Assembly: GCF_963921235.1 (NCBI RefSeq) | Contig: NC_086105.1 | Location: forward strand, 102,734,001 to 102,798,000 | DNA length: 64,000 nucleotides | Reading direction: 5' to 3' | Origin: Mobula hypostoma | Lineage: Eukaryota | In this document: in pieces, positions 19,302-50,655 of the stretch | Layout of the letters: every line of letters begins with the position of its first letter | Position numbering within the stretch: the first letter of the stretch is position 1 | The notes under the pieces: model-generated | Databases searched by the model: none | The model's input: the letters and a program-made list of their open reading frames with translations, nothing else | Told to the model about the DNA's origin: nothing | Position numbers and translations under genes: made by a program

Positions 19302-20089
19302 ACACTTGCTGAACAATTGCTTGTCTGAGCCTCACGTCTGCCCACACAATGCAAAGAATCATTCTCTAGTTTTATTGAATAATAATTCAATACATTCATT
19401 TCCAAACTGTAGTGCTCTTTCATTGTTAATTGAATTTCACTTCTACACGTCATTCTGCTGGCTAAAATTTTTCATTAATTAATATTGTTATTTTTTAGAA
19501 GTTAATATGATTCTAATGTTGGAATCAAATCCATGTCTGTTCTGACATAACTTGAATAATCTTCTCATCTATATAGATATGGGATTGTACCAAGGGAAAA
19601 CTGATGACAAACTTACATCATTACATTAAGGCATGATTATTTTGAAATGCTGGGCTACACAGTAATGTGTACTTCATGGTCCCTGAGCTCTGACTGATGA
19701 TTCTGCTATCAACATTCACTGAGTAACTAACAGTACTTTACATCATCAGTGGGTAGATTTATGAGTTTGGTAAATGGACACACATGGACAAAGCTCTATT
19801 TCTGTTTTGTGTGTCCATCCAATGTTGAACCAGCCGTGAGCATTGACAAACTTACTGTAGGTGGAATGTAAACATGAAAAGACCAATGCGGGAAAATGTG
19901 GGTTCTCAACAAACAAAGATGTGAGACTTTATAATGAGAAATAATAAAATGTCAGTGGAATTAAGCAAATGTCTCCTGTCTGTTTGTGTATTGGATTTTC
20001 AATAAGATTTTGATATGTTTATGTTCAGGTGAAGATAAACAAGGACAGCTCACATAGAATTTGGGGGTCACTGTGTCCTTGAGAGTTGT

Positions 20090-20805: not shown

Positions 20806-21699
20806 CTTGGTAAAATGACAGCTATGTTATTGTTCACAATTTTGGACACTTTGTTTTCTTAAAAAGACATGTTCACTCTTAAGGTGTTTTGCAAAGTTTC
20901 ACAGGACCAGTTAGAATATCAGATGTGGATTAAAAAATGCACAACAATAATGAACCAACATGCTAATTTACCAGTTTAATTTAGAGAAAGTCAGAAATAC
21001 TCAAGAAGTCTGTAAATTTTCCTTTTTCTCAGCCACTTGCACAGCCTGACCTGTGAGTAATTCCAGCATTCTGTTTCTGAAGTTTCCAGCATTTGCAAGT
21101 GTTTTCGATTATCAGATGTGTGGGTGCTCACCACTGATAGTACAATGTTAAGTACATTTTCTACTCAGTAAATGAAGTAGCCCATTCTGCCATAAGTAGC
21201 TGGTAACATTCACGTCACCAAGTGCCAGGTAACAAGGACCTCCTTGCATGCAGAATTTTATCCTTGTGTTCATTACTAGTACAAAATTGCCTAACATTAC
21301 CATCCTGTGTATCATGACTGACCAAGTACTGAACTGGATCAGCTACAAAAGTACTGTGATAAATGAGTTGGTCAGACCCTGGCTTTGCAACGGCAAGTGA
21401 CTCAGTTATACCACAGTAAAACCTTTCCACCTTCCAAAGGTACAATTCTGCAATGTGATGGAATGCTCCCAATGTTCTTTTTGTATTTTGTTAGTTTTTT
21501 TGTGTGGGGGTGGGGGGGATGTTGGGTGGTTGAAGATTGTGTTGCTTTTTTTTTGTGTGCAGGGGGTAGGTTTGCTGTTTCTCTTTGGATTTACTTCCAC
21601 GGTTTTCTTTGTTTCATGGCTATCTGTAGAAGAAGACCCACAGAGTTGTATACCACATACATACTCTGATAACATATGAACCTTTGAAACTTTGAACAG

Positions 21700-23820
21700 T
21701 GCATTGAGGTAATACATGGTAAAGCAATAACAGAATGCAGAATAAAGTGTTACTTTCACCAAGAAAATGCAATGCAAGCTGACAGTAAGATGCAAGGCCA
21801 CAGTGAGGTAGGTTGTGAGGTCAAAGGATCATCTTATTATGGTACTGCTGAGTGCCCTTATAACTGTGGGGTATCGTCTGCCCTATGGAGGGTGGAGAAG
21901 AGAGCATGTCAGGGGTGAGTGCAGTCCTTGATTATGTTGGCTTCTTTACCAAGGCAGCAAAAGGTGTAGGTAGACTCCATGGAGAGGATGCTACTTTTTT
22001 TTCTGTGCTAAATTTTGGTCACAACTCTGTATTTTCTGCTGATTATTGGGAGAGCAGTTGCCACACCAACCTGTGATACATCTGGATAGGATGCATTCTA
22101 TGTTCTATCAATAAAAACTAGTGACGGTCCGATGGGCCATGCCAGATTTCTTTAGCCTCCAGAAGAAGCTGGGATTTCTTGGCCATGGTGGAACTAGGAG
22201 CCTGTTGGTGATATTCACTCCTGGGAACTTGAAGCTCTTAACCTACTTGATCTCAACACTGTTGATGTAATCAGGTGTGTGTGCACCACCCACCCTCGTG
22301 AAGTCAATGACCAGCTCTTTTGTTTCACTGACATTGAGGGAAAGATTGTTGTCATGACAGAATGATACTAGACTCTTACTTTATTCAGTTTATTGTAATT
22401 TGAGATTCGGCTCACTGTGCTGGTATCATTTGTAAACTTGTAGATGGAGTTAGAGCAGAGCCTGGCTACACAGTTGTGAGTGTACAGAGAGTAGAGTAGG
22501 CTACCGCTGATGAAGCCTTGTGGGCCGCCAGTGTAGAGAATAATGAAGATGGAGGTAATGCCACCTACCCTTACTGAGTGTGCTCTGTTGGTTAGGAAGT
22601 CAGGTTGTGAGCTGAAGACAGGGTAGCCCTGTGACATTGATGGTCCTCTGTTCATGTGTTCATTCTGAAGCTGAAACAGCATGCTACAACTCTAGAGAGT
22701 CACCAGCATGATTTAGAGTGGGAAGGTCAGGGAAGCTTCTATGGTTCCTGGTGATTATACCTGTGGGAAGTGTGTTCAGTTGCAGCTGCTGACTGACCGT
22801 ATAGAGTGACTGGGGCTGTAGATGAATCAAAAGGATGAGATACTGCAGACAGAATTGAGAGAGATGGGTAGAAGGTTAAAATGTAGGAGCAGTAGGGTTA
22901 TAATCCCTGGGTAACTCCATGTGTTGTTTCCTAGTGAGCGTGGGAATAGGAGGATAGGGTTGATGAATGTGTGGTTGATGAACTGGTGCAGGTCTGAGGT
23001 ATATCTTGGAGTGTTGGGATATCATTCAGGACAGGGATCACCCGTACAAGAAGGACACATCGCAATAGGCTTCCTGCTGGAGGCAATTGCTAAAGTTACT
23101 TGGATGGGTTTGAACAAGTTGAGCAGGATATGGATCCAAAAATGGTTATGCAATCAGTGAGGAAACTGAGGTAACTATAGAGGCTAAATTGAACAAATCC
23201 AGCCAGCAGGAGCAGGACAAGAAGCGAGGAAGGTTTGATCACCTAAACTGCAAGAAGCAGAACAGGCTGATGTATCTTCGGATATCTTTGGCATGTGGGA
23301 TTGTGATAGTATATCTACTACAGAAATATGAGACAGTGAGTGGATATCATTTGTTTGGATTTTCAGGAAGCCTTTAACAAGGTCTGGCACACAAAGGGGC
23401 TACTCTGGATAAGTGATAAAGTACAAGTATAGATAGAAAGATGGTTGATTGCCAGAAGTCGGAAAGTTGAGATAAAGGGTACTTTTCGGGATGGCTGCTG
23501 GTGACTTTTGGAATTCCAAAGGGGTCAGTGTTGGATTTGCAGCTTTTCACTTCATACAATAATGATTTGGATGGAACTGATGATATTGTGGCTACATTTG
23601 ATAAGCGAAGGAACAGGCTATAGCCCTGAGGCAAGTAGTCTGTAGAATGACCTGGACAGGTTGGGAGAGTGGGCAAAGTTGAGGGAGATGGGATACAGAA
23701 TAGTGAATGTGAGGTTATACACATTAGAAGAAGAACAACAGACTATTTTTCTAAATGGGGAAAATTTTCAGAAATCAGAGGTGTAAAGTGACTTAGGGTT
23801 CCTAACTTAGAATTCCTTCA
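21700..23820. mobile_element. Mosaic of old Rex1/L2-like (minus, ~21700-22610) and CR1 (plus, ~22720-23820) fragments shared with the duplicate block
   Basis: DFLTNRAHSVRVG...GGPQG...LYSLYTHNC in ORF 22368..22682 is paralogous to ORF 60609..60917. Confidence 0.7.
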
Positions 23821-26933: not shown

Positions 26934-27888
26934 CTAACGGTACTTGGAGCTCAATTCATGTGCGAGCAACTCAAGGAATTTGTCGACAGCACAGTGGGTT
27001 GCAGGGGTGAACGCAGGCAAGTAAATGGCCAGGGTAACTGTGATACAATCAGCCAACAGCTGTAAAAGAGAAAAATTATAAAAATGAGGCAGTGTTAGTA
27101 TTCGCAACTCATGATTTTACCCATCAAATGAATGTTGGTTGTTTGTACTTTGACTGCTTTGCTGTGTATCGTGTAGAGGGAAAAAGTATTCCCTGCAAAG
27201 CTGAACAAGACTACACTTCTAGATAGCTGAAGCTGCAACTAAATAAAGTTGAAAGTTCAGAGTTGCTGATCTAATCACAATATCATAGTTTGTGTAATGA
27301 CAATGAGGAAGAATCTGTAAAATTGTTACATACCTGAAAGTTATGAGGATCCACGAGAAGTTCTTCACCATGTCTCTTGGCAAGCTTTTCCAGATGTTTA
27401 CTCAGGTTGTCCACGTTGTGGGCTGCATCCGCCACAGCTTCCATGACAATGCGACCATGTCTTCTGACAGGCTGGTCAGAGGCTTTGTAGCCATTGAATT
27501 TCGGGAAGTACGTCTTAGCTTGAGGGTGGATCTCAAACAACCTTCAGAAACATGGAAAATGAAGGCAGAAATTATGTTCCAACACAATATACACTACATC
27601 TCACTTAGGATTAAATTCCATTATTCTCCAGACAAGTAATCACATTATTTTGGAAAAACTTCAATCCTATGCAGAGAATATCTTCGTACACTTATTAATG
27701 GTCTCAATGTGCAAGGGAAATGCAAAGAAATATTAACAATTACAAATAATAGCTGAAAATGCAATAACTATACTGTGAATCTAAGAAAATTACCTAGCTA
27801 AAGCATCGGCACCCAAAGTTTCAGCATTTGCCTTTATGTGGTGGCCTAGTTCTTCTATAACCTGTTTGTTGGGGCCAGAGAGTACCAT
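26934..27888 (-). CDS. hba: Haemoglobin alpha chain; complement(join(26934..27059,27334..27541,27794..27888)); 142 aa
   Basis: Spliced protein: MVLSGPNKQVIEELGHHIKANAETLGADALAR/LFEIHPQAKTYFPKFNGYKASDQPVRRHGRIVMEAVADAAHNVDNLSKHLEKLAKRHGEELLVDPHNFQ/LLADCITVTLAIYLPAFTPATHCAVDKFLELLAHELSSKYR. Alpha hallmarks are MVLS, PQxKTYF, VDPxNF, DKFL and SKYR. GT-AG introns are 252 and 274 nt. Distal His60, proximal His89. Confidence 0.97.
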
Positions 27889-27955
27889 TGTTGCTGAGTT
27901 TTCACTTTTTCAGATCTCACAATAACCAGGAGATGCCTCTGGCTTGATGAGTCCA

Positions 27956-28157
27956 TATTTATTGTAATTCACACTGAGCCACACCCTCTCCACCCCACTT
28001 TTCCCATTGGTTGACAATAGTGAATAGAGAACCAATCGTCTGTTTCACATATAACTGTTGGCAAAGATATCCTGTCCAGAAGAGCTAAACACTACCTGCA
28101 CATATTTCACTTGATGCACACATGTAAAGGTTTAGTTTATTGCCATATAAGTTATCA
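27956..28157 (-). promoter_or_regulatory. Alpha-globin promoter: AATAAATA TATA-like box (27956-27963), CCACACCCT (27979-27987), CACCC (27991-27995), CCAAT (28006-28010; inverted copy 28032-28036), TGATAA (28152-28157)
   Basis: Motifs read directly. Their spacing from the ATG is typical of globin promoters. Confidence 0.75.
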
Positions 28158-28218
28158 GTAAATGCACATTAATAGTCATTAATCAATATGTGTTTCCAAA
28201 CTAACCCTGTTATAATAA

Positions 28219-28341
28219 TCCCTTACTCACTCTTCCTTCAGTTAGTCCTGACGAAGGGTCTCGGCCTGAAACGTCGACTGCACCTCTTCCTGGAGATGCT
28301 GCCTGGCCTGCTGCGTTCACCAGCAACTTTTATGTGTGTTG
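28219..28341 (+). mobile_element. 123-bp Penelope-derived short insertion with 13-bp TSD
   Basis: TSD cctgttataataa at 28206-28218 and 28342-28354. The body matches the 3' repeat of the Penelope-type copies at ~30950 and ~47980. Confidence 0.85.
28243..28280 (+). ncRNA. Minimal type I hammerhead ribozyme motif
   Basis: TAGTC-CTGACGA-AGG(GTCTCGG)CCT-GAAAC-GTC^GACTG. Core CUGANGA at 28248-28254 and GAAA at 28268-28271, with predicted GUC cleavage after 28275. Stem I is UAGUC/GACUG and stem III is the palindromic ACGU. Confidence 0.8.
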
Positions 28342-29530
28342 CCTGTTATAATAAGTTTAATTTGTTTTATCGTTATTTTGATCTGGGTCTTACATTGAAT
28401 TCATCTATTCAAGTTCATCCTCTTCCCCCTTAGTCTTTTTATTTCACAACTTGCGCAGGGGGACATGGTTTTCCAAAATCACAAGACACCTACTGTGTAC
28501 ACTGCACAGAAACCGATTGGGCAAAACAAGTTATAATGTAACCATAATGGACCAGGAAGTGTGTAGGTCTGGAATCACATGTATGTTATGCATTAGCATA
28601 TGGCTGAAGTACTTGGTTACTTCCAAGTCTATGAAAGGTGTCAGAATGTGAAGACCTGAGGGTGGCCAGGACAACTTTGGAATATTGGTCTGGAATTTCA
28701 TAGACATGGGTGAACTGAGCTGATGTTACAGGCAGATTTGGAGAAGGGAACTCTACTGTGAGCTCAGCTCGGGTTTAAGGTTACAGGTCTGACCAAACAG
28801 TGGAAGGGAGACCGATGAAGTCAGTGATCTGGTATCAGAGATGTGCAGCCAAAGATTTTTAGTTCTTCCCGAAGCTCAGTTGGAGCAAAGTTCTATTCAC
28901 TCATTGCCAGACATCAAATAGCTAGTGTGACTGAACAAAAGCAGGGGAAGAATCAATGGAGCTACAAAGAAATATAATATTGTGTGTTATTGTACCTATT
29001 CTGCATTTAAATTTTCCTTGTTTTCTGAAGATAGGCTGATAGGTAAACTCCAGTCCCACTGTGGCTGAGTTTGAAGGCAGTTTTATTGATCACCAACATG
29101 TTACAGTGCGGAAGGAGCTGTGTAAAAAGGCAGTACTTCTCAGTGTTCTCATGAAAGATGGATTCAAATGTTGATTAAAATTCCTTCAACTTGTAAAAGT
29201 GCTTCTGACAAATGAATGAATAAATATACAAGCAATTATATAGAGGCCTACCATATGTTGAAGATTAATTGCTTAACAACACAATAGTAAGTAATCAGTA
29301 AGTAAGTACTGATATCTCAGAGCTAGAAATAAAGTGTCAAACCTAATCAGGTGGGACATAACAGAACCTAATGCGTTTTTGAAGTCACTGAGAAATATTT
29401 AGAACAGGTTATTTGAAGAAATCTATTTTTTTTTAAATCTTTTCATATTTAATTGAAATAATTTTGTGATTGGCCTGAATTAAATCTGAAATTGTGTGTA
29501 ATAATGATCTAACAATATCTACTGAATATA

Positions 29531-30700: not shown

Positions 30701-31090
30701 TGGCCTTCTTTTTATTCTTAACTTCTCCCTGCTCCCTCTTCTATTCCCCATTATGGCCTCTTCCCGCTAATCCTCACCTGCCTATCACCTCCCTCTGATG
30801 CTGTCTTTCTTCCCTTTCTCTCTTCTCACTTATCTGATTCCTTCCTCTTCAGCCCTTTATATTTTCCACCCAGCTGACTCCACCAATCACCTTCTAGCTT
30901 GTCCTCCTTCCCACCCCCTACCTTTTATTCTGGCATCTTCTCCCTTCCTTTCCAGTCTTGCTGAAGGCTCTTGGCCCAAATTGTTGACTGTTTATTCATT
31001 TCCATAGATGCTGCCTGATCTGCTAAGTTCCTGCAGCATTTTGTGTGTGTTGCTCTGGATTTCCTGCATCTGCAGAATCTCTTATGCTTA
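30700..31090 (+). mobile_element. Penelope-like 3' repeat with decayed hammerhead
   Basis: Pyrimidine-rich tract resembling 36215-36430, then agtcttgctgaaggctcttggcccaaattgttgact (mutated core) and gatgctgcctga...tgtgtgttg. Confidence 0.65.
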
Positions 31091-31749
31091 TATATTATTT
31101 AGCTGTCTATCTAAGCAACCATCTATCTATCTATATATCTGCAGTTTTTACAATCAGAAGTAGAGCAGTTGTCAAACTAAGCCATGGTGCATCCAAATAC
31201 GATTGATAGAAATTGATCAGGACAAGTCCATTTTTTAATCCCTGAGGAAGTAGTGGTGAACTTTCTCGGCCATGATGGACGAGGACAAGATATAAGAAAG
31301 ACAAAAAAAAACTATTCAACATTTACTTTATTCGTCTGATGCATCACAGCTTGGTTTGCAACTGGTCTGACCAAGACAAATAAAAATTGCTGAGAGCTGA
31401 GATGGCAGCCCAGTCCTTCATGGAAACCAGCCTCCTCTCTGTGGACTCTGTTCACACTGCTCCCGATGTCTTAGGAAAGCAGTCAACATCATCAAAAACC
31501 CCACTCCACCTCAGTCATTCAATCGTTCAGAATGATTTATTTGGATGGCATGCAAAAGAAAGTTCTTCTCTATTACCTCAGTATATGTCACAATAATAAA
31601 TCAATTACAAACTACACATTAAATGCTGAAGCAAAAAAAAAACTTATTGGAGGAAAAATATAATCCACAATGTAGGTAACTTCAGAAATAATGTCCATAA
31701 AGCAGGAAATATTGCAACTGGAAAAGAATCTTAAATACAATAACTCAGC

Positions 31750-32380
31750 TGGTACAACTGCAGCACAACAGCTTCAATGACCCAGGTTCAATCCTGACCT
31801 CTAGTCCTGGCACGTGGCCAAGTGGTTAATGCGCCCATCTAGTGATCTGAAGGTTGCTATTTCGAGCCTTGGCTGAGGCAGCGTGTTGTGTCCTTGAGCA
31901 AGGCACTTAACCACACATTGCTCTGCGACGACACCGGTGCCAAGCTGTATGGGTCCTAATGCCCTTCCCTTGGACAACATCGGTGTCGTGGAGAGGGCAG
32001 ACTTGCAGCATGGGTAACTGCCGGCCTTCCATACAACCTTGCCCAGGCCTGCGCCCTGGAAGCCTTCCAAGGCGCAAATCCATGGTCTCATGAGACTAAC
32101 GGATGCCTAAAAAGTACTGACTCTGTGAAGTATAGGCACTTTCCCTGTGACCACACGGGATTCTTTCGGGTGCTATAGTTTCTTCCCACATTCCGAAGAC
32201 ATGCGGGAAGGTTAATTGGCTATTGTAAATTACCCTTAGTTCAGCTCCGTGGTAGACTTGATGGAGATGTAGAGAGAATAGGGTTAATCATAAAATTAAA
32301 CTAGTTTGGAATACATTGATGGGAAAATTAATCTAGGTGGGAACTAGCATGGATTTGAAGGGGAAACTGTTGCTTTTCTG
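31750..32380 (+). mobile_element. V-SINE-like element interrupted by a younger tRNA-derived SINE (~31804-32113)
   Basis: The inner element has box A TGGCCAAGTGG, box B-like TTCGAGCC and gtgtccttgagcaaggcacttaacc. The outer has ggttcaatcctgacc, then a V-domain-like cgggtgctatagtttcttcccaca. Confidence 0.7.
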
Positions 32381-34399
32381 TGTCTTAAGGAAATATGGAA
32401 TATACTTACATACTTTAAAGGATCACTGTTTCTAGACATTTCTTTATAGCAATACAGCAAAACGGTGGATGAAAATAGTTATTGAAAAGAAGTTTGAAAC
32501 AAGTGAATTCTTGTGAAATTTTCAAAGGACCATAATTGAAGACTCCAAAAGGGCAGAAGAACCAAAAGTGAGGGAAAGTGGAGACTGACCTGTGGATGTT
32601 ATGTTTATTTAACAATTATGTCTTACAGTGCCAGGAAGAATGTGGCCAGTTGGACTTATTGTGGATCAAGATTGAAAGTGAATTTTGAAATGATCACAAG
32701 TTACAGAGGGACAGAGATTTTCAAGTAGAAGTCACAAATAAATTTACAATTTTATATCAAAAGACTGGTTCTTTCTATTCTACTTTCAAACATAAAGGTA
32801 TTAAACCAGTGCATCAGAGTGAAGAAGACATGTGTGTCCTCTGCACTAACGATTTAAACACAAACAAGAGAAAATCCACAGATGCTGAAAATCCAAGCAA
32901 CACACACAAAATGCTGGAGGAAGTTAGCAAGTCAGGCAGCATCTATGGAAGAGAGTACAGTCAACATTTCAGGCTAAGACCCCTCAATTTAAATATTTAA
33001 CATTTAAACGATTTAAACATTTAGGATTTTTCAATGTATAGTCCACAACATATGACTTTTCACCCTCTTACTGCCCTCCTTATCCGAGCATAAAGTTATT
33101 CTGCTAAGACCATTAGGTAAACATGTGTCCAGTAATCATTATGTTAGGAGGTTTATTTTCATTCATGGAATCACAGAGTAATGCAAAACTGGAAGATGCA
33201 GTTTACAGCACAAACCATGTAACATGGAACAGTACTGCACTGGACCAAGCCCCTGGTCCATGATGCTGTGCTGAATTAATTAATATAATGACTCTAATTA
33301 AAATAATCCCGCTGTCCTCACATTGTCCACATACATTGATTCCCTGCAGTTTGTCCCAAAGTAACTGTACCAAGGGAAAGCAAAATATTGCAGTCGCTGT
33401 TAGTCTGAAATAAAAAAAAAACAAAGTGTTGGAGTTACTCAACAGAGTAGGCAGGCAGCACTTGAGCAAAGAAAATATATCAATGACCTCTCATTAAAAC
33501 TGGAAAAGTGGGAAAACAAGCATGTTTCAGGTTTCAGAGTGGAGAGACCAGAGGGAGAATCTGAGCTAGGGTAGAGGTGATTTCTCTCCAGTATTCACAA
33601 ATGTTGAGTTTCCTGGAGGAGATGAATGAAGATAATAGAGAGACAAATGCTTCCTTTGAATTACCTATAGTTTTCACACACCTCCATCTCCACACCTACA
33701 CTCTAGACACCCAAAATGAATGTTCATCGACATTGTCTGGTTTCCAATCAACTCCAGTCTACAGCCACTGGAAAAATATTGTTTAGGCTGCATTTAAGAT
33801 ATTCAATCTATCATCCACGTTCATGTGTGAAGATACTTAGCTGGTGAAATTAATATTTGTGCTGCATCTTAACTCCAGAATACACACTAACAGTATATAA
33901 TAGGGCAAAGACAACCATGAGTTAACATAAACTTATGTTTACATGAATTATAGATAACTTATAATGTACAAAAATAAGCAATACTAGTGCAAGATTGAGA
34001 GGGAAAAACAACAGATCAGTGTACCAATGATATCTCTTCCCTAATCTCAAATGTATAATTACAGCAGTCCTCTTTGACTTCCTTTTCGAATATATGTTGT
34101 ACCATTGTACAATAAATAGGTGGGACTGAATTGTCAGCTGCTCTGTATTTCTCTTAAATATTTCCATTTTTTTCACAGTAACTCATTTTATTCTGCGGCA
34201 AAAATGCAGAAATACACAATTATGCAACTCATTCTCTTTGTACAATTTCTTTAATATTGAAGCCATATCTATTATTTCACTTAATGAAGAATATAATTAT
34301 ATAATATGTAACTTCAACTGTTAAATTATTTTAAATTAATCAAAGTTAAAGCCTTGAAAAAAACTGGTTTAACAATGCAAAACTATGAAAACCTAAAGT

Positions 34400-34850
34400 G
34401 ATATGATAGCTGATTTAGACGCCTGATGTTATTAATGCTTACAGTTATTTGGGCTACAGCTTGTTAAAACATTTGGAAAAGCTGTTTTGGATCATCAGAA
34501 GTTCAGAGATGGGGGGTGTAGATTATCTAAAGACATCAGCTTCTTGGTGTGCCTAGATATCTGCAGGTTTGAAAAGTGTGGGACAAAGGATAATTACACT
34601 TATTTTTCTGAGAACAACCTTTCCAAGATAAAGAACTTAGCTTAAGATCACAAACAACTTTCTCTCCATATAGGGCTACCTTCCAATATTTGGTACAATG
34701 ATTCAGCGAGTTGCAGCTGAACATTTGTTGATGAGTCATTGGAACTTTATCAGCTTTGAAGTGATGAATATACACAATAGACCATTTCCAGAACATCCAA
34801 GTGCACGAGTCTTGCAGATGTATGATTGGGTACAACTCAGTTATCAACCG
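34400..34850. promoter_or_regulatory. Candidate erythroid enhancer, copy A
   Basis: WGATAR at 34404, 34523, 34626, 34747 and 34841. TGATGAGTCAT at 34729-34739, E-boxes at 34714 and 34815, GGGTG at 34514. Confidence 0.5.
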
Positions 34851-35112
34851 TTGGTCCAGCCTTAAGCAAGTTGAACACCGTATTTCAATATTTACAAACT
34901 GATTATAACAGCAGACTTCAATGGTAGAACTCAGGACATTTACTGTGCATATATTTTTACCAGTATATATCTAGCTTAAAGTGAAGCTAGAGAGAATAAA
35001 GCAAATATAACTGAATTTGATGCTAGATTATTTCTTAAAGTTGCAGGTGTTGGAGTATTCTTCAGTCTCCCATGTTTCCTCACGTGGACAGGTGAGAGAT
35101 CCAAAGAACAGA

Positions 35113-36430
35113 AACTAAACCCATCAACTCTAGAGAACTCATAGTTCCCTTACCCTACTCTACTATTTCTACATCCTACCCAACTACGCCTGCCTTTTTG
35201 TTGGCTATTTAGAACATGTTCTAAGCCTTCACTGGTAATGCTTCCCAATGCTTCCTGCACTACATTGATGACTGCATGGCTGTGTCATCCACCCGTGATG
35301 GGCTTATCAATTCAATCGACTTTGCCTCCAATATCCACCCCACTATAGGTCCATTTCTGACACCTCCCTCCCCTTTCTCAATCTTTCTCTCTCTCCATCT
35401 CTGGAGACAAGTTGTCTACCAACATCTTCTATAAACCTGCTTATTCCCTCTTCCCAACCTCTCAGCTATAAAAATGCTATCCCATTTTCACAGTTCCATT
35501 GCCTCCACTGCACCTGTTCCCAAGATGAGGCTTTCCTTTCCAGAACATTAGAGGCGTCCTTCTTTTTCAAAGAACGGGGTTTCCTTTCCTCCAGCATTGA
35601 TGCTGCCCTAACCCACACCTCCTCCATTTCCCAGATCATCTGGGCTCACCTCATCTTCCTGCTGCCTTAACAAGAATAGAGTTCCTCTTGCTGAAACCTG
35701 CACCCCATGAGCCTCTGAATCCCACACATCATTTTCTGCAACCTTCGCCATCTTCAATGGAATCCTCTGTGATTCCCAGAGGAACATCTGCTTTTCACAG
35801 GGATTGTTCCCTCTGTGATTCCCTTGTCTATTTGTCCCTGTGCACTATCTTCCCTCCTGGCACATATCCCTGCAAGCAACATACATGCTTAACTTGCCCA
35901 TTTGCCTCCTTGCTTGCCCAACACTTCATCGGTGAATCTGTTGCGGTTATCTATCTTATCTGGTGCTCCCAGTATGGCCTCATCTATATTGGTGGAATCT
36001 GATGTAAATTAGGGGACCACATTGTTGGCACCACTGTCCCAACCACCAAAAGCAAAATTTCCCAGTGCCCAACCATTTTAATTGCCATTCTCATTCATGT
36101 TCCAACATGTTAGTCCACGGGTCCTCTTCTGCAACAATGAGGCCACTCTGAGGGTGGAGGAGCAACATCTCGGAATGAACATCGATTTTTCATTCCGGAA
36201 AAATAAATATTTGCCCCTCCCTTTTCTTCTATGCCCCACTCTGTCCCTTTACATCTTATCCTCACCTACCTATCACATCCTCCTGGTGCCCTCCTTTTTC
36301 CCTTTCTCTCATGGCCCACTGTCTTCCCTTATCCGATTCCTTCTTCTCCAGCCCTTTACCTTTCCCACCCACCTGATTTCAGCTAATCCTCCTTCCCCTC
36401 CCACCACTTTTATTCTGGCATCTTCCCCCT
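35113..36430 (+). mobile_element. Degenerate Penelope-like element (RT and GIY-YIG remnants)
   Basis: tacattgatgactgc (YIDDC), ttctataaacct (FYKP) and VIYLIWCSQYGLIYIG (GIY-YIG). Confidence 0.8.
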
Positions 36431-37106
36431 TTGCAGAAGGGATCACATTGCAAGGACTGAAAGGATTGGAAAAAGTGCAAGTAAACCTGGAAAGAGAAAT
36501 TAAAGATCAAGGTCAAATGCAAGTTACACAGGGTGTAAATACCTTGAAAATTAGTTTCTTGTTACAACTGTGTACCTTGTAGCCTGAACAAAGTCACTGG
36601 AGACACACTGAAATGAGTGGAGATAAAAGTGTTTTATTCAAGAAAAATGAACAGCAGGCATCATATTGAGATATTCTTGGATGGAGGTTTCGTGGCCCAA
36701 TATCACATGACATTTTTACATACTAAAGGTCAAAGGTAACGACAGGACAATTCTACAGTTACAATGTATCTACAATACTTCATTGAATTACATGCAGTTT
36801 TCACACATCTCCTTCAACCCAACACCCCAGACACCCAAAATGAATGTTCATCAGCATTGTATGGTTTGCAATCAACTTCAGTCCACAGCTAGAAGAAAAC
36901 TATTGTTTTGGCTGCATTTTAAACATTAATCTATCTTCCGCCATCATGTCTGATGATAGGTTGCTGTTGAAGTTAATATTTGCTCTATAACCTAACTCCC
37001 AAATATACACTAACAGTATATAACAGGGCAAAGATAAACATAAGTTAATACAAACACAAATTGTACATAACTTACATGTGCAAAATATAGAACAAAATAA
37101 GTAATA

Positions 37107-38013
37107 TTTTATACTTTATACTTTATTGTTGCCAAACAATTGATACTAGAATGTACAATCATCATAGCAATATTTGATTCTGTGCTTCCCGCTCCCTGGA
37201 ATACAAATATTAAATATTAAAATATTAAAAATAGTAAATATTAAAAAGTTAAATTATAAATCATGAATAGAAAATAGAAAACTGGAAAGTAAGGTAGTGC
37301 AAAATAACCGAGAGGCAGGTCCGGATATTTGGGGGGTATGGCCCAGATCCGGGTCAGGATCCGTTCAGCAGTCTTATCACAGTTGGAAAGAAGCTGTTCC
37401 CAAAACTGGCCGTACGAGTCTTCAAGCTCCTGAGCCTTCTCCCAGAGGGAAGAAGGATGAAAAGTGTGTTGACTGGGTGGGTCGTGTCCTTGATTATCCT
37501 GGCAGCACTGCTCCGACAGCATGCGGTGTAAAGTGAGTCCAAGGACGGAAGATTGGTTTGTGTGATGTGCTGCACCGTGTTCATGATCTTCTGCAGCTTC
37601 TTTCAGTCTTTGACAGGACAACTTCCATACCAGGTTGTGATGCACCCTAGAAGAATACTTTCTACGGTGTATCTATAAAAATTAGTGAGGGTTTTAGGGG
37701 ACAGGCCAAATTTCTTTAGTTTTCTCAGGAAGTAAAGGCGTTGGTGGGACTTCTTGGCAGTGAACTCTGCTTGGTTGGACCAAGTCAGGTCACTTGTGAT
37801 ATTGACCCTGAGTAACTTAAAACTTTTGACCTGTTACACTTGTGCACCACCGATGTAAATTGGATCGTGCAGTCTGTTACTCCTTCTGAAGTCAACAACC
37901 AATTCCTTTGTCTTGCTGACGTTGAGGGATAGGTTATTGTCTTCGCATCATGACACCAGGCTCTTAATTTCCTCTCTGTACTCAAACTCATCATTACCCG
38001 AGATGCAGCCTAC
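37107..38013 (-). mobile_element. 5'-truncated Rex1/Babar-like LINE
   Basis: (TAAAGTA)n tail and TSD AATA (37103-37106, 38014-38017). Translation LPSGRRLRSLKTRT...NSFFPTVIRLLN. The empty site is in copy A at ~33980. Confidence 0.9.
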
Positions 38014-38125
38014 AATACTAGTGCAAGATTGAGACAAGAAAGATTAGTTCACTGTACCAATGCTATCTCTTTCCTAATCTTAAATACATAATTACAACAG
38101 TCCTTTTTGACTTTCTTTTCAAATA

Positions 38126-39988
38126 CCAGTCGCTACATGGAATCCAGGCATGAACTCCGGAAAGCCATTAAGGGCGTCAAGAGGCAATATTGAGCCAAGT
38201 TAGAAGTCCAGACTGACCAGAGGGATGCCAGTAGACTATGGCAGGGTCTGAATGAGATCACTGGGCACAAAGAAAAGGCTGGGAATATCAATAACTATGG
38301 CGCTTCTCTTTCTGGCGAATTTAACGTATTCTACGCAAGATTCGAACAGAAGAGGAGCGTCCCGCTCCTGGTGGCATCAAGATTCATCGTCACCGAGGAG
38401 GACGTTATCTTCCTGAAGATAAATCCAAGGAAGGCGACAGGCCTAGATGGCGTCCTGGGAGGGGTTCTCTGGGCCTGTGCAAGCGAGCTAGCTGGATTGT
38501 TTGCTGACATCTTCAACTGCTCCTTGCTTCAGTCTAAGATCCCCTCTTGTTTTATGAAGGCAACGATAATCCCAGTGCCGAAGAAGAGCAAGGTGGCATG
38601 CCTGAATGACTATCGACCTGTGGCTCTGACATCAATTGCTATGAAGTGCTTCGAGCGATTGGTTATGGCACACATCAACCACAGCCTACCGGTCAACCTC
38701 GACGCTTTGCAATTCGCCTATCGGAGCAATAGGTCAACGGCAGATGCCATCTCTCTGGCCCTACATTCCTCCTTAGAACACCTGGAGAATAAAGACGCAT
38801 ACGTAAGGCTCCTTTTCATTGACTACAGCTCTGCCTTTAATACCGTCATTCCAAATAAACTGATTTCTAAGCTCCGGAACCTGGGCCTTAGCACTCAAAT
38901 CTGCAGCTGGATCTTCAACTTCCCCACAGACAGGACCCAGGCTGTAAAAATAGGGGACAAGCTCTCCTCTACAATCACTCTGAGCATGCGGTGCCCCACA
39001 AGGCTGTGTACTCAGCCCCCTGCTGTACTCACTGTACACCTATGTTTGTGTAGCCAAGTTTCCATCGAACTCAGTATGTAAGTTTGCTGATGACACAAAA
39101 ATTGTAGGCCGTATCTCAGGTAATGATGAATTTGAGTACAGAGAGGAAATTAAGAACCTGGTGGCATGGTGTGAAGACAATAACCTATCCCTCAACGTCA
39201 GCAAGATGAAGAAATTGGTTGTTGACTTCAGAAGGAGTAGCGGACCGCATGACCCAATTTACATCAGCGGTGCGCAAGTGGAACAGGTCCAAAGCTTTAA
39301 GTTCCTCGGGGTTAATATCACAAATGACCTGACTTGGTCCAACCAAGCAGAGTCCACTGCCAAGAAGGCCCACTAACGCCTTTACTTCCTGAGAAAACTA
39401 AAGAAATTTGGCCTGTCTCCTAAAACCCTCACTAATTTTTATAGATGCATTGTAGAAAGTATTCTTCTAGAGTGCATCACAATCTGGTATGGAAATTGTC
39501 CTGTCTAAAACCAGAAGAAGCTGCAGAAGATCATGAACACGGTGCAGCACATCACACAAACCAATCTTCTGTCCTTGGACTCACTTTACACCACACGCTG
39601 TCGGAGCAGTGCTGCCAGGATAATCAAGAACACGACCCACCCAGCCAACACACTTTTCATCCCTCTTCCCTCCGGGAGAAGGCTCAGGAACTTGAAGACT
39701 CATATGGCCAGATTTTGGAACAGGTTCTTTCCAAATGTGATAAGACTGCTGAACGGATCTTGACCCGGATCTGGGCCGTATCCTCCAAATATCCGGACCT
39801 GCCTCTCGGTTTTTTTTTGCACTATCTTACTTTGCATTTTTCTATTTATGATTTATAATTAAAATTTTTAATATTTACTATCGATTTGTAATCCAGGGAG
39901 TGGGAAGCGCAGAATTAAATATCGCTGTGATGATTGTACGTTCTAGTATCAATTGTTTGGCGACAATAAAGTATAAAGTAGAAAGTAT
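38126..39988 (+). mobile_element. 5'-truncated Rex1/Babar-like LINE with RT domain (frameshifted)
   Basis: NDYRPVALTSIAMKCFERLV, LQFAYRSNRSTADA, LFIDYSSAFNT and KFADDT. Tail aaagtataaagta, TSD AAATA (38121-38125, 39989-39993). Confidence 0.93.
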
Positions 39989-40394
39989 AAATATATAATC
40001 ATACCATTATACAATAAATAGGTGGGGCTGAATTGTCAACTACTCTGTATTTCTCTCAAATATTTCCATTCTTTTCACTGTAACTCATTTTATTCTGCTG
40101 CAGAAATACAGAATTACGCACATCCATTCTCTTTGTACAATTTCTTTAACATTGAAGCAGCATTTATTATTTCACTAAGAGATGAATATAATTATATAAT
40201 ATCTAACTTCATCTGTTAAATTATTTTTAAATCAATCAAAGTTAAAGTCTTGAAAAAACTGGTTTAATGATGTAAAACTATGAAAACCTAATGTGATATG
40301 AAAGCTGATTTAGATACCTGTTATTTAGGCTTCTGTTTGTAAAAACATTTGGAAAAGCTTTTTTGGATCATCTGAAGTTCAGAGATGTGAAGTG

Positions 40395-40730
40395 TAAACT
40401 ATCTAAAGACTTCAGCTTTTTGGTGTGCCTAGATATCTGCAGGTTTGAAAAGTGTGGGACAAAGGATAATTGCAATCATTTTTCTAAAAGCAACCTTTTT
40501 TCAAGATAAAGAACTTGGCTTAAGATCACAGGCAACAACATTTTCTCCATATAGGGCTACCATCTAATATTTGGTGCAATGATACAGCGAGGTGCAGCTG
40601 AACATTTGTTGATGAGTCATTGGAACTTTATCAACTTTGAAGTGATGAATATACACGATAGACCACTTCCAGAGCACACAAGTGCACGAGTCTTGCAAAT
40701 GCATGATTAGGTACATCTCAGTTATCAACT
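40395..40730. promoter_or_regulatory. Candidate erythroid enhancer, copy B
   Basis: WGATAR at 40399, 40504, 40628 and 40722, TGAGTCA at 40613-40619, and CAGCTG retained. All are at positions homologous to copy A. Confidence 0.5.
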
Positions 40731-42029
40731 ATATTCAAATTGATCCAGCCTTGAGCCAGTTGAGAACCATGTTTCAATATCTACAAAATGATTATTATAA
40801 CAGCAGACTTTAATGGTAGAACTCAGGACATTTACTGTGACTGTTTGTTACCAAAATATTTTTATTTTAAAGTGAGGCTATATGGAGAGATTAAAGCAAA
40901 TGTAATTGAATTTGATGCTTGATTATTTCTTAAAGTTGAAGGGTTTTGGAGTATTATTCAGTCTCCCGTGTTTCCTCACCTGGACAGGTGGGAGATCCAA
41001 AGCACAGAAAAGAACAATGGTATAGTTGTGGTTGGGATGGACAGGAAGATGTTAATGGTGGATAGAGTCAAGTAATGAGCATGATTGAGCAGAAATGGTT
41101 TGGATATTCTCATGTTTATAGAGCATGGACAGAGGAGGCTAGAAGGCATACATCAGATCTGTGGGTAAACACGAACTCAGCAGCTGACTGACTGAGACTG
41201 GGATGGTGTTGTTTGGGAATGAGCACCTAATGGTCACAGGATGCATGAGAAGGTGACCTCAAAACTAAATCTGACACCAAGGATGTTGAGTTTTAGACAG
41301 CTGCCAGCAGAAGGGATGGAGTGAGATACTGGAGAATACAGTGACAAAGGCCAAAAAAAATCTTCAATCTTCTCAATGATTCAACTTGTCAGGATGTGCC
41401 CTTTGTATTAAAGTATATGTCAACAAAAGTGCATTTCATCCAGACTAACACAGTGAGCAAAAAATGTAATTGAGTCCATTAACAAACTGATCAACTGATA
41501 ATATAGTGGTCCTAAATTTAGTGATTATTTAGGGGAGCCAGGTTGCTCTTGCCTTGAATATATAACCTCATTGATTAATCTGCTGCCAAGCAAGGCTAAT
41601 TTTCTGTACTCCTGATATTAAAATCAATAAAAAGCAAAACAAATGCCTAAGATTGAATGACAATGTTATCTGTTCAAAATATAAAAACAAAGAAATTCAA
41701 ATTGTACCAAACTACCAATAAATGTTTGAAGCAAATTTTTATTCATTTGATAATAGAAATTAGGCAAGACATCTCACAACTGAGAGGCAATGGAGGATTC
41801 CTGAGAAATGGCAGTGAGGTGTGGGGTCAGTGTTGCTGGGAGATCTGACAGTATGTTCTAGAAAAGGCTGAATGCTGGGTTATCCAGTGAGTGCGTTTAG
41901 CAGGAGTTCCCTCTACCAGTAAAGTATAAAGTGCCGTCAGATAAAACTGCATTTACATTCAATCTTCTTTGTTTTTATATCTTAGTTTTGACCTAACTCT
42001 GTCACCTGTTAGAGGACAGGTAGAGCTAA

Positions 42030-44190
42030 ATTGAGGAAAATATTTCCATGAGTTACCATTCCTTCTGACCTTGCCATCTCTGAGGCAGAATATTCTGTCC
42101 ATAGCAAGGGCCTTAACTTTGTCCCCCTTTGCCCAGACCGCAGTCAGTTTCGCACTCGCCATGATGCTGAGCGCTTCTCCTGTTGCTTCTGTCTTCTTCG
42201 GAATCCCACACCATCCCACACCAATGACTCCTTCTCCCACCTTCAAACGTCTTCTTCTTGAACACCCCACTCTGGTCCTCTGCCTGCTCTGGATCTTGTC
42301 TTCTCTAATTGCCGACGAGACCACAAGCAGGTCAGCTTCAGCACTCCTCCTTCCTCCTTGAAACTTACAGCCTCTGAACGCACTACCCCCCGCTGTCCAC
42401 AATTCCAAACTTACCTTCAAGCCAGCAGACATAAGGGGGCTGTTGTAGTGTTGCAGACTGACCTCTACTGTGCTTCTTCTTAGCCTGCCCACGGACAGTC
42501 TATACATGGCCCAGACAGAACTGGACACATTTTTGCGCCTTGTTGTTGAATTCAGCAAGTTCTGCAACAGTACAGGGTTCCTCCAGTGATGGGCATTGCA
42601 GGAGATGTTGCATAGTTTGTGGCTCAGTTCCACATTCACAAGTTGTTGGGCTGGTTGTATATCCCCATTTGCTTAGTGACACCTTTGAACAACCTACACC
42701 AGTCCTAAGTCTGTTAAGGCACTTCCAGGTTGCCCTGGGAGAAGGCTTTCATCCGGTGGAATTTCCATCGTTGGGCGTTGTTTGAGACTGGCGAGCCGGG
42801 CTTTCCACAAGGCGATGCGGGCTTCAGATGGGGTTGATTGTAATGGAATAACACTGTTCATGAAGCTCTTCCTTGACTTTAGGCGGTTGGGTGTAAGTGT
42901 ATGACCATATAGAGGGTGCCTCTCATCTGATGTTTGACAGAGTCGTCTTTTCCTGCTGGCTACCATTCTTCTTATATCGGGACGGGGGGGGGGCGATACC
43001 CGCCAGGATATATAGGCTGTTGGTGTTTGTTGGTTTTAAACAACCTGTGATAAGTTGAAAGCTTGCATTCAGAATGGCATCCATCTTCTCAGCATGAGTA
43101 GATCTTTCCCATGCAGGGCAGGCGTATTCGGCAGTGGAATAGCAAAGAGCAAGTTGCACTAGCTCGCAATGTTTTCGAGCTTGCTCTGCCATGCTGAGAT
43201 CAAGTGGCAGCTCTCAGACGCCTCCTCTTACCTATCCCTTGAAAAAGGACCCCACACAGAACCATCAGGTCATTGTCTCTGGCATCATCACTAAACTCAT
43301 CAACTCTAGAGAACTCATAATTTCCTCACCACACTGTGCTCATTTCTACCGAACAATGCCTGCCTTTTCATTGGCTACGTAGAACAGCGCATGTTCTAAG
43401 CCTTCACTGGTAATGCTTCCCAACTCTTCCTGCACTACATTGACAACTGCATGGTTGTCATGCACCCATGATGAGCTCGTCAATTTAATCAACTTTGCCT
43501 CCAACATCCACTCTGCCCTTAAATTCACTTGGTCCATTTCTGACACCTCCCTCCCCTTTCTTGGTCTCTCTGTCGCCATCTCTGGAGACAAGTTATCTAA
43601 TGCCATCTTTTATAAACCTGCTGATTCCCTCTTCCTACCCTGTCTCCTGTAAAAATACTATTCCCTTTTCTCAGTCCCTTTGTCTCCACCGCATCTGTCC
43701 CCAGGATGAGGCTATCCTTCCCAGAACATCAGAGATGTTCTCCTTCTTCAAAGAGCAGGGTTTTCTTTCCTCCACAACTGATGCTACTCTCAGACATATC
43801 TCCTCCATTTCCTGGACATCTGCACTCACCTCATTTTCCTACCTCCTTAACAGGAATGGAGTTCTTTCTGTCGTCAGCCAGACCACATGAGCCTATGAAT
43901 CCCACACATCATTCTCCGCAACCTCCACCATCTTAAGCAGGATCCTATCACCTAACACGTCGTTACCACACCTCCACTCTGCTTTCCACAAGAATTATTC
44001 CCTCTGTGATTCCCTTGACTATTTGCCCTTCCCCACTAATCTCCCTCCTCGCACATATCCCTTCAAGTAACAGATATGCTATACTTGCCCATTTATCACC
44101 TCCCTTACCCATACAGTCCTTGGAGATGAGGCAACACTTCAGCTATGCCTGTTGGGGTTATCAATTGTATCCGATGATCCCAATGCGACC
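42030..44190 (+). mobile_element. Degenerate Penelope-like element (paralogue of 35113-36430), interrupted at ~42497-43185
   Basis: tctgaggcagaa...agcaagggccttaactttgtcccc (SEAE..SKGLxFVP) and DPTQNHQVIVS. The RT remnant is collinear with 35113+. Confidence 0.75.
42497..43170 (-). mobile_element. Non-LTR retrotransposon 3' fragment (Vingi/I-group-like)
   Basis: ALCYSTAEYACPAW...ITGCLKPT and a C-terminal zinc-knuckle CECGTEPQTMQHLLQCP. Confidence 0.7.
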
Positions 44191-46570: not shown

Positions 46571-46592
46571 ATAACTTCTCTACAGTTGCTAG

Positions 46593-46824
46593 ACCCCTCT
46601 ACTGTAGGTAGGCAGTAATAAACCTCTCTACTATCACTGGACATTAATAGACCTCTCTACTGTCGCAAGGCAGTTATAGACCTCTCTACTGTCGCAAGGC
46701 AGTTATAGACCTCTCTACTATTGCTAGGCAGTACTAAACCCCTCTACTATAGCTGGACAGTAATAGATATCTCTACTGTAGGTAGGCTGTAATAGATCTC
46801 TCTGTTATAGCTAGATACTAATAG
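46593..46824. repeat. Minisatellite, 8 x 29 bp (consensus ~ACCTCTCTACTGTNGCTAGGCAGTAATAG)
   Basis: Units start at 46593, 46622, 46651, 46680, 46709, 46738, 46767 and 46796. Confidence 0.9.
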
Positions 46825-47914
46825 ACAAAGAAAGAAACTGACCAAAAGCCACCTTAACCTTTGTCTCTTCTCACCGAAGCCTCAAGAGCCAAAGCCACAA
46901 GCTCCACACTCTAGTACCAGCCCACTCACAGAACTTTCTCTCCCACAATGACTGCTCAATTAAACCTCACACCTTTTTCTGGGCCTCTGTCAAGTGACTA
47001 ATACACAGCGACATCACAAGCCTGCCAAAATGTTTCAAAAGCCCCACTCACATTTTAATCCTCACACTCAGCTCACTCACTTCCAAACAAGAGACTACTT
47101 GTGATATGTACCATGAGCTAGTACAAATACGATGATCCAAATGGCCTCCTCTTATGCTGGATGGATATATGAAAAAATGGTAAATATGAGGAACATTGTT
47201 TTTGTGCTAACCTGCAGAAAATACAGAGAAAGTCAATGGTTGATATCAGTGCTTATGGAATCCTGATTTACAAGCAGCCCTGGTTGTACATTGGACCACC
47301 TGGATACAAATATTGTATAAGCCACTCACTTTAGCCCAGTCCTTATCATCAGCCAGAATGTCCACCAAACCCCACTTCCCAGTTTATTGCTCCACCGCCT
47401 TTGACATCCTCTGTAAAGGGTTAAATGGTTTACAGTTTGCGAGGTTTGATTGTAAGACGGGTAATTTTTCTGCACTCTTTATTTAATATTTTCCTTACAT
47501 TTCCTATGGTAACTTATAGTGCATTTTACGTATTGCTCAGTACTCCTGCTACATAACAACAAATTTCATGACATATGCTGCAACAATAAACCTAATTCTG
47601 ATTCTGATTCTGTAATTCTAAAGCCCTAATGCACTACACATGGGAGAAGTGGCTGATATTTGCTGCAGCTACACTGAATGAGTTGGAGGCGAATAAATTA
47701 AGGGCCACTATAAAAGTGAAAATCAAAGCGATGAACTTAAACCTGTGAGGCTGCAGCCCTACTTGTTGTGAATCTCAGATGGAAACTCATTGGAAAACAT
47801 TACTCTTTGAGTGTATTGTACCTGCTGCAACTGTGATCCAAGTCACCGGAGAGGCACTCAAGCTGATGATATAAAAGTCTTTACTCAGCCCATTAAACAA
47901 GCATTCTCCTGGAG

Positions 47915-48869: not shown

Positions 48870-49365
48870 GAATTGAATTGAATTGACTTTATTGCTTACA
48901 TCCTTCATATACATGAGGAATAAATATCTTTACGTTATGTCTCCATCTAAATGTGCAATTTATAGTAATTTATAATATATAATATGTACAAAACACAGTC
49001 AATATAACATAGAAATACAATTGCATCAGCAGAAATTAATCAGTCCGATATCCTGGTGGAGAAAGCTGTCCTGGAGCCTGTTGGTCCAGGCTTTTGTATT
49101 GCGGTAACATTTCCCAGATGGTAGCAGCTGGAATAGTTTGTGGTTGGGGTGGCTTGGGTCCCCAATGATCCTTTGGGCCCGTTTTACACACTTGTCTCAC
49201 TTGTCTTTGTAAATGTCCTGAATAGTGGGAATTTCACATTAATAGATGTGCTGGGATGTCCGCACCACTCTCTGCAGAGTCCTGCATTTGAGGGAAGTAC
49301 AGTTCCCATACCAGACAGTGATGCAGCCAGTCAGGGTACTCTCATTTGTGCCCCTGTAGAAGGCT
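48870..49365 (-). mobile_element. Rex1/Babar-like LINE 3' fragment
   Basis: (aattg)n tail plus tttatt. The body (gatgcagccagtcaggg, ttcccataccagacagtg) resembles the other Rex1-like copies. Confidence 0.65.
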
Positions 49366-49461
49366 TTGGCCAAAGGTTTTGGGCTCAGAAAGGTTCGGTT
49401 TATGAGAGACAGGGTGTCAGCTGCATCAGAGTGTTAAGATAAAGCCAGACGTATGAGTATT

Positions 49462-50655
49462 ACATAGAACATAGAACATAGAATAGTACAGCACATTACA
49501 GGCCCTTTGGCCCACAATGTTGTGCCAACCCTCAAACCCTGCCTCCCATATAACTCCCCACCTTAAGTTCCTCCATATACCTGTCTAGTAGTCTCTTAAA
49601 CTTCACGAGTGTATCTACCTCCACCACTGACTCAGGCAGTGCATTCCACGCACCAACCACTCTCTGAGTAAAAAACCTTCCTCTAAAATCCCCTTGAACT
49701 TCCCACCCCTTACCTTAAAGCCATGTCCTCTTGTATTGAGCAGTGGTGCCCTGGGGAAGAGGCGCTGGCTATCCACTCTATCTATTCCTCTTATTATCTT
49801 GTACACCTCTATCATGTCTCCTCTCATCCTCCTTCTCTCCAAAGAGTAAAGCCCTAGCTCCCTTAATCTCTGACCATACTGCATACTCTCTAAACCAGGC
49901 AGCATCCTGGTAGATCTCCTCTGTATATTTTCCAGTGCTTCCACATCCTTCCTATAGTGAGCCGACCAGAACTGGACACAGTACTCTAAGTGTGGCCTAA
50001 CCAAAGTTTTATAGAGGTGCATCATTACATCACGACTCTTAAACTCTATCCCTCGACTTCTGAAAGCTAACACCCCATAAGCTTTCTTAACTACCCTATC
50101 CACCTGTGAGGCAACTTTTAGGGACCTGTGGACATGTACCCCTAAATCCCTTTGCTCCTCCACACTACCAAGTATCCTGCCATTTACTTTATACTCTGCC
50201 TTGGAGTTTGTCCTTCCAAGGTGTACCACCTCACACTTCTCCGGGTTGAACTCCATCTGCCACTTCTCAGCCCACTTCTGCATCCTATCAATGTCTCTCC
50301 GCAATCTATGACAATCCTCTACACTATCTACAACATCACCAACCTTTGTGTTGTCTGCAAACTTGCCAACCCGCCCTTCTACCCCCATATCCAGGTCGTT
50401 AATAAAAATCACGAAAAGTAGAGGTCCTAGAACCGATCCTTGTGGGATACCACTAGTCACAATCCTTCAATCGGAATGTACTCCCTCCACCACCACCCTC
50501 TGCCTTCAGCAGGCAAGCCAATTCTGAATCCACCTGGCCAAACTTCCCTGGATCCCATGCCTTCTGATTTTCTGAATAAGCCTACCATGTGGAACCTTGT
50601 CAAGTGTCTTACTAAAATCCATATAGATCACATCCACTGCACTACCCTCATCTAT
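49462..50655 (-). mobile_element. Young 5'-truncated CR1 LINE
   Basis: ORF 49615..50460 has GIPQGSVLGPLLF, KFADNTK and LYKTLVRPHLEYCVQFW, with a (CATAGAA)n tail. Confidence 0.93.

Follow-up and report, generated by a model that had tools for sequence, protein, structure and literature searches.

A motif-rich module shared with skates is a candidate erythroid enhancer in the haemoglobin cluster of the devil ray Mobula hypostoma

How do cartilaginous fishes control their haemoglobin (Hb) genes? Alpha-globin enhancers of lampreys and bony vertebrates lie inside Nprl3, a linkage put at >500 million years (PMC11933693); for cartilaginous fish, a 2026 survey places Nprl3 on a different chromosome from the Hb cluster, and asks whether new regulatory elements were gained or old ones act in trans (PMC13023373). 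Full-text literature searches returned no globin enhancer described for cartilaginous fish. Here we analyze a 64-kb stretch of the genome of the devil ray Mobula hypostoma (64,000 nucleotides of contig NC_086105.1, positions 102,734,001 to 102,798,000, assembly GCF_963921235.1, with zero N runs; hereafter “the window”), which carries an alpha-globin gene and two beta-like globin genes. Upstream of the alpha gene lie two copies, A and B, of a ~350-bp module which, on balance, we read as an erythroid enhancer of old origin in the Hb cluster of batoids, a reading built on comparison of sequences between rays and skates.

A sequence-only reading of the window had described a cluster of GATA, AP-1, E-box and CACCC motifs ~6.5 kb upstream of the alpha gene, together with its tandem duplicate, and every one of these motifs was found where it had been placed. 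Copy A (34400-34850, GC content 0.38), which we computed to lie 6.6-7.0 kb upstream of the alpha gene, holds five WGATAR sites (34404, 34523, 34626, 34747 and 34841), TGAGTCA at 34732 within TGATGAGTCAT, CAGCTG at 34714 and a CACCC box (GGGTG at 34514). Copy B (40330-40740) holds four WGATAR sites (40399, in the form CTATCT, 40504, 40628 and 40722), TGAGTCA at 40613 and CAGCTG at 40595. The tandem duplication is real as well (34100-35114 vs. 40002-41010 at 85%, 35114-35903 vs. 43290-44094 at 79%), with further duplicated pieces at 33646-33932 vs. 36774-37055 and 33979-34092 vs. 38013-38125. Three insertions split copy B, namely a first ~900-bp arm (37104-38016), a reverse-transcriptase ORF (open reading frame) with the inverted second arm behind it (38371-39988), and a 2.28-kb piece (41011-43289); without them A and B would be adjacent tandem repeats (Table 1).

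Both copies sit amid abundant transposons, and copy number was assessed by aligning contigs of three related species and of one putative RNA run to positions 32500-38400 at a likeness of at least 80%. Over 34076-35060 the summed depth was 22-91, with 2-6 contigs per site in the three related species (single-copy contigs are ~8-17 deep), which rules out a high-copy repeat for this interval; over 33979-35114 it was 22-106 in the same species. The neighbouring intervals 32697-33090, 35258-36439 and 37031-38015 are very high copy (1e3-1e6 deep), and 33485-33878 reaches ~2e3. Judging from contig breaks at 34097-34100 and from a joint linking 36773 to 33646, the related species also carry a B-type copy and the tandem junction, and the duplication thus predates their divergence. 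The k-mer shares in related species were somewhat higher for the core than for the 5.9-kb stretch used as control (0.54 vs. 0.38, and 0.18-0.26 vs. 0.07-0.10), in a comparison based on only 39 words and on a control that contains repeats. No contig of the putative RNA run fell on the module (zero depth), a single run which we count as uninformative.

We next compared six alpha-gene loci with 10-kb flanks, from thorny skate (L001 and L006), little skate (L004), sawfish (L002 and L003) and electric ray (L005). The module matched one place per skate, at 5347-5689 of L001 and 5060-5399 of L004, in both cases as a unique reciprocal-best match (ray vs. skate BLAST E-values 1e-7 to 5e-11). Among the six loci, an nhmmer search with the ray module recovered only L004 (E = 1e-16) and L001 (E = 1.5e-15), and the skate module searched against the whole window recovered only B (E = 3e-13, 40387-40749) and A (E = 1e-12, 34504-34803), with no further copy in the rest of the window, in the sawfish loci L002 and L003 (alpha2), in L005 or at the thorny skate alpha2 gene (L006). 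Alignment to other Hb loci thus identifies a unique orthologue of the module within the Hb cluster of two skates. In thorny skate, alpha1 and alpha2 stand head to head, are divergently transcribed and lie 60 kb apart; the module is located between them, 4.3 kb from alpha1, and its orientation relative to alpha2 equals its orientation relative to the ray alpha gene. The region upstream of thorny skate alpha2 is itself collinear with that of the ray (blocks 28026-28174, 31623-31710, 32335-32441, 34092-34132 and 34254-34419). As the two skates are 95-97% alike everywhere, a skate-skate comparison is uninformative on constraint, and only ray-skate comparisons are used below.

Conservation within the module is concentrated on its motifs. 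The motif test used solely positions named beforehand from the ray sequence: 35/40 and 36/40 of these were identical in the two skates (88-90%), as against 151/281 and 150/281 of the other module positions (53-54%), and equally sized intervals placed at random within the module gave P ≤ 5e-5. Over the whole module, ray-skate identity was 53-59%, when unrelated DNA aligned in the same way reached 28% on average and 41% at most. The runs that are invariant in the four-way alignment (A, B and both skates) are the CACCC box (GGGTGTG), CTATCT-N8-CAG, the block ATCTGCAGGTTTG, the Maf recognition element (MARE) and CTTTATCA..TTTGA.GTGAT. The composite CTATCT-N8-CAG reads CTG-N8-AGATAG on the other strand, and its 8-bp spacing, within the 7-9 bp that mark erythroid E-box/GATA composites, is invariant in all four sequences. 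At the position of the MARE, both skates have TGCTGAGTCAT, which matches the full NF-E2 consensus (TGCTGASTCAY) and has no second instance in either 21-kb locus. From the motif list of the earlier reading, the GATA sites at 34523 and 34747, the MARE and the CACCC/KLF site (GGGTG(TG)) of copy A are kept in both skates. The skate modules, with a GC content of 0.48, contain 5 and 4 WGATAR sites vs. 0.67 and 0.55 expected (P = 0.0004 and 0.0014), and two of the skate sites have no WGATAR at the aligned ray positions, which suggests site turnover with density kept. Together, low copy number, a unique skate orthologue, motif-selective conservation and a perfect skate MARE support the proposal of the earlier reading, i.e., a putative intra-cluster globin enhancer doubled by local duplication.

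The two ray copies provide another comparison. Substitution divergence between A and B is 10.1% in the core, 11.0% and 12.1% in the low-copy flanks, and 18.8% and 19.0% in the co-duplicated transposon parts (P = 3e-5 for the latter vs. the core and 2e-4 vs. the low-copy flanks), and this low divergence relative to the transposon parts persists when CpG sites are excluded. The impression that the core is better conserved than the transposon parts of the duplication was therefore correct (10% vs. 19% substitutions), but its identity is not raised above that of the immediate flanks (P = 0.28), so that the entire 1-kb low-copy block, and not the motif core specifically, is unusually alike. When changes are polarized by the skates, A has 12 derived substitutions and two indels and B has 12 derived substitutions, hence neither copy is decaying faster; at the composite site, the CTATCT of B is ancestral and the TTATCT of A derived.

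Several results weigh against an enhancer and have to be set beside the above. Motif density, an argument of the sequence-only reading, does not exceed chance at the scale of the window. Locally, WGATAR counts are raised in copy A (5 vs. 1.58 expected, P = 0.018) and copy B (4 vs. 1.21 expected, P = 0.027), the motifs of B being inherited from A and hence no independent observation; however, six regions of the window hold at least five WGATAR per 450 bp, and a cluster of at least five GATA sites occurs in 98% of block-wise dinucleotide shuffles (35% when an AP-1 site is included too, and 7% with CAGCTG as well). The motif evidence from the ray genome by itself thus exceeds chance only weakly. 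The CTG-N8-AGATAR pattern is common (16 instances in the window), and TGATGAGTCAT, the form found in both ray copies, amounts to an AP-1 site: its AP-1 core is intact, but neither side has the GC of a MARE, and the Maf half-site differs at its C. Three sites of the earlier motif list are not ancient, with AGATAA at 34626 and CAGCTG at 34714 absent in skates and the GATA site at 34404 gained specifically in copy A, and module B has lost its CACCC box through GG>AA at 40390-40391 (AAGTG). Over its whole length the module does not surpass the alpha-globin introns in identity (57-71%), and since these introns and several other collinear blocks align too, alignability shows survival rather than constraint; with neutral identity set at 71%, a binomial estimate of the motif test falls to P~0.01-0.02. 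The low A-B divergence ends exactly at the two large insertions of B, and gene conversion within uninterrupted homology would explain it equally well as constraint. Finally, the module was not found within the 10 kb examined around the electric-ray alpha gene (L005).

Many of these points are what would be expected if the module were neutral leftover DNA, kept alignable by the slow evolution of cartilaginous fishes, with chance motifs in AT-rich sequence and an A-B likeness maintained by gene conversion: the motif cluster loses significance at the scale of the window, A and B are no closer in the core than in its flanks, introns and other collinear blocks align as well, and divergence shifts just where B carries its insertions. 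We nevertheless consider this explanation unlikely, given that conservation is centred on preselected motif positions within the module itself, that the aligned skate site is a perfect 11-bp MARE, that GATA sites are strongly enriched in the GC-richer skate sequence, and that just ~10% of the 7-kb upstream region is alignable. Constraint could also be genuine but concern a regulatory element of another kind, which would not drive globin, such as an enhancer that works in GATA/AP-1 cells other than red cells (endothelium or further blood lineages), a boundary element, or a promoter from which an unannotated non-coding transcript starts. GATA sites with TGAGTCA are not exclusive to red cells, the ray site is plain AP-1 and not a full MARE, and the flank block next to the module (34090-34440) is conserved at least as well without erythroid motifs. 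Yet the GATA/half-E-box composite with its 8-bp spacing, the CACCC box and the perfect skate NF-E2 site form an erythroid signature, the module stays beside alpha-globin genes in two orders, and neither contigs of the one putative RNA run nor an Rfam match, a conserved fold or a conserved ORF were seen on it, which makes such an element quite unlikely.

An old low-copy mobile element that came to lie in the globin cluster by chance, and that formed one composite element with the mid- and high-copy pieces around it, seems highly improbable. It would account for the same transposon fragments flanking the same sides of both copies (33646-33932 and 36774-37055 on one side, 35115-35903 and 43290-44094 on the other), as well as for the 48 kb that separate module and flank block in thorny skate. 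However, the 2-6 contigs per site in three species fit the expanded Hb cluster itself, each module-bearing locus has one copy and the other four loci none, the module keeps its order and orientation with respect to the orthologous alpha gene, and no terminal repeats or coding capacity were seen; a transposon origin would, in any case, be compatible with enhancer function.

For the erythroid enhancer that we favour, we infer factor binding, enhancer activity and target genes along the following lines. In red-cell precursors, GATA1 together with the TAL1 complex would bind the CTG-N8-AGATAR composite and the TTATCA sites, a bZIP dimer of the NF-E2/small-Maf type would bind the MARE (perfect in skates, with one mismatch in the ray), and a KLF1-type factor would bind the CACCC box; the bound module would then loop to the promoters, of CCAAT/CACCC/TATA type, of the alpha and beta genes nearby. 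The block would have been tandemly duplicated in the devil-ray lineage, after the split from sawfish and before the Mobula species diverged, and transposons would later have inserted around both copies and not inside them. It is possible, if doubtful, that module and flank block together constitute the main enhancer of elasmobranch Hb clusters, comparable to a locus control region (LCR), either as the Nprl3-intron enhancer left behind when Nprl3 moved or as its replacement. If true, its tandem doubling in devil rays would accompany a very large expansion of globin genes.

Table 1. Features of the window around the two modules, with positions in the window.
Feature	Position	Strand	Description
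Module A	34495-34860		~350-bp conserved motif module, defined by motifs and skate alignment; CACCC 34512-34520; GATA/half-E-box composite TTATCT-N8-CAG 34523-34539; conserved block ATCTGCAGGTTTG; MARE-like TGATGAGTCAT 34729-34739; TTATCA 34747-34752; TTATCA 34841-34846
Module B	40371-40760		Tandem paralogue of A; composite CTATCT-N8-CAG 40399-40415; MARE-like site 40610-40620; GATA 40504, 40628, 40722
Flank block A	34090-34440		AT-rich conserved non-coding, adjoins module A; sole erythroid motif is the A-specific TGATAG at 34404
Flank block B	39998-40335		Paralogue of flank block A
Low-copy block of copy A	33979-35114		Flank block, module and ~260 bp on the right; from contig depth
Low-copy block of copy B	40002-41010		From self-BLAST and pairwise alignment; remaining piece 38013-38125 cut off by retroelement insertion
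High-copy transposon fragment, co-duplicated with copy A	35115-35903		Summed depth 1e3-1e5
Partner of transposon fragment, in copy B	43290-44094		19% diverged from 35115-35903
Retroelement insertions splitting copy B	37104-39988		Inverted self-match, reverse-transcriptase ORF
2.28-kb insertion in copy B	41011-43289		At junction of low-copy block and transposon fragment; absent from copy A
Alpha-globin gene	26934-27888	-	Three exons; nearest downstream target of the modules (predicted)
Alpha-globin promoter	27889-28175	-	Two CCAAT boxes, CACCC boxes (GGGGTGG, GGGTGTGG), ATAAATA, one GATA site
Beta-like globin gene 1	17755-19105	-	Downstream of alpha
Beta-like globin gene 2	56088-57348	-	Upstream of both modules

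The sawfish locus L002 stops exactly where the module would start and covers the flank block only, its first 414 bases matching 34034-34440 in A at 76% (77% for flank block A vs. L002 5-414) and the paralogue in B (L002 4-338) at 80.5%. In thorny skate, the counterpart of flank block A lies upstream of alpha2 (L006 2574-2879) and is collinear, with 64% identity over its full extent and 73% over 34254-34420. An 18-base run within this block, AAAACTATGAAAACCTAA, is invariant across ray, sawfish and thorny skate, and no RNA structure was found over 34090-34440. At the module itself, two non-regulatory candidates were rejected: a 103-aa ORF (34536-34847) has no Pfam match and is disrupted by indels in B and in the skates, and for an RNA gene the Rfam search was empty and no consensus fold was obtained.

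Among the insertions in copy B, the retroelement interval consists of two inverted arms of ~900 bp (37104-38016 and 39101-39988, 88.5% alike, summed depth 1e5-1e6) on either side of a reverse-transcriptase ORF on the forward strand (38371-39078, Pfam RVT_1, E = 5e-14), a layout that resembles a Penelope-type element. The 2.28-kb insertion has no second match in the window, and its 226-aa ORF has no Pfam match.

All three globin genes of the window lie on the minus strand. The predicted alpha-globin protein matches Mobula hypostoma XP_062913465.1 at 142/142 residues, and its promoter, with CCAAT, CACCC and TATA-like boxes and a GATA site, presents the expected partners of the module; a promoter stretch at 28026-28081 is 88% identical to both skates. 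The two beta-like genes sit in a large duplication (17141-23820 and 55471-62503). Mobulid Hb clusters are greatly expanded, with 20 alpha and 9 beta genes in the giant manta (PMC13023373). Alpha intron 1 (27544-27795) is conserved like the exons, at 71% with two gap positions vs. both skates and 81% vs. sawfish, and intron 2 far less so (42-57% vs. skates); gene conversion, or a regulatory element within intron 1, might account for its conservation. Upstream of alpha, short unique collinear blocks (28354-28995, 29365-29514, 31623-31710, 32335-32441 and 32516-32581) have counterparts in sawfish, electric ray or thorny skate, with 29388-29429 at 88% identity to electric ray, and may be additional regulatory elements. 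On the skate side, an extra alpha-globin exon 2, probably a pseudogene fragment, lies 2.2 kb downstream of alpha1 (L001 13163-13369, L004 13080-13286, 64-70% identity to the ray protein), and a second GATA-dense window is found ~2 kb upstream of alpha1 (L001 7620-8127, L004 6997-8371).

Other observations concern the remainder of the window. GATA sites are packed most densely at 30760-31231, and the combination of GATA, AP-1 and CAGCTG recurs in a third window, which overlaps in part the reverse-transcriptase ORF of a long interspersed nuclear element (49365-49867). Over 28100-28450, Rfam returned no hammerhead ribozyme at the gathering score or at E ≤ 1, the sole hit being a sub-threshold one to PrrB/RsmZ that seems spurious. 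The interval 32697-33090 is an extremely abundant short repeat, with a depth of 1e5-1e6 in the three related species, abundant in the putative RNA run as well, with an inverted copy (30962-31072 vs. 32879-32986) and thousands of contig ends at 32895-32950. Two tandem arrays were also seen: one at 1-2108, with a GC content of 0.68, strong strand skew, GCCTCCA-type 7-bp units and higher periods of 26, 31, 38 and 69 bp, and the other at 46590-46826, made of ~8 copies of the 29-bp repeat TAGACCTCTCTACTATCGCTAGGCAGTAA with 58- and 87-bp higher-order periods.

How does the module compare with known globin enhancers? MCS-R2 (HS-40) of human and mouse has a compact core of ~300-350 bp with several GATA, NF-E2/MARE and CACCC sites, lies upstream of alpha-globin at a distance of a few to tens of kb, within an Nprl3 intron, contains two MAREs and is conserved chiefly at its factor sites. 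The module resembles it in size (~350 bp), in its combination of GATA, MARE (MARE-like in the ray) and CACCC sites, in its position upstream of alpha and in its site-focused conservation, but differs in lying between globin genes rather than in an Nprl3 intron and in having one MARE instead of two, mismatched in the ray. The core of HS2 in the beta-globin LCR combines a MARE, GATA, CACCC and E-box motifs and a GATA/E-box composite typical of GATA1-TAL1 complexes, and the module shares with it a MARE (MARE-like in the ray), the GATA and CACCC sites and the GATA/E-box composite. In HS2, however, the MARE is in tandem, and HS2 is one of several sites of an LCR that lies far upstream of the amniote-specific beta cluster, whereas the module has a single MARE and is tandemly duplicated inside a mixed alpha/beta cluster. 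The chicken beta/epsilon enhancer is likewise an intra-cluster element, an erythroid one located between globin genes and shared by the genes on either side, as the thorny-skate module lies between two divergent alpha genes; the likeness is one of position and logic only. The chicken element comes from another, unrelated lineage and locus, where sequence similarity to the module would not be expected.

The enhancers in nprl3 introns of lamprey and fish are ancient, erythroid and drive the linked globin clusters (as cited in PMC13023373). Unlike these, which are defined by their place in nprl3, and unlike MCS-R1 to R3, the Nprl3-intron enhancers of alpha-globin, the ray module lies between beta-like globin gene 2 and the alpha gene, and only retroelement domains were found in the larger ORFs of the window. 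By position, the module falls outside the Nprl3-intron enhancer family. It offers a concrete element, with coordinates and conserved across two orders, for testing how Hb genes are regulated without linkage to Nprl3, and would show what becomes of an enhancer as the genes around it multiply and transposons accumulate among them. Set against the enhancers known from other vertebrates, the module appears to be a good candidate for the switch that cartilaginous fishes may use in place of the Nprl3 one.

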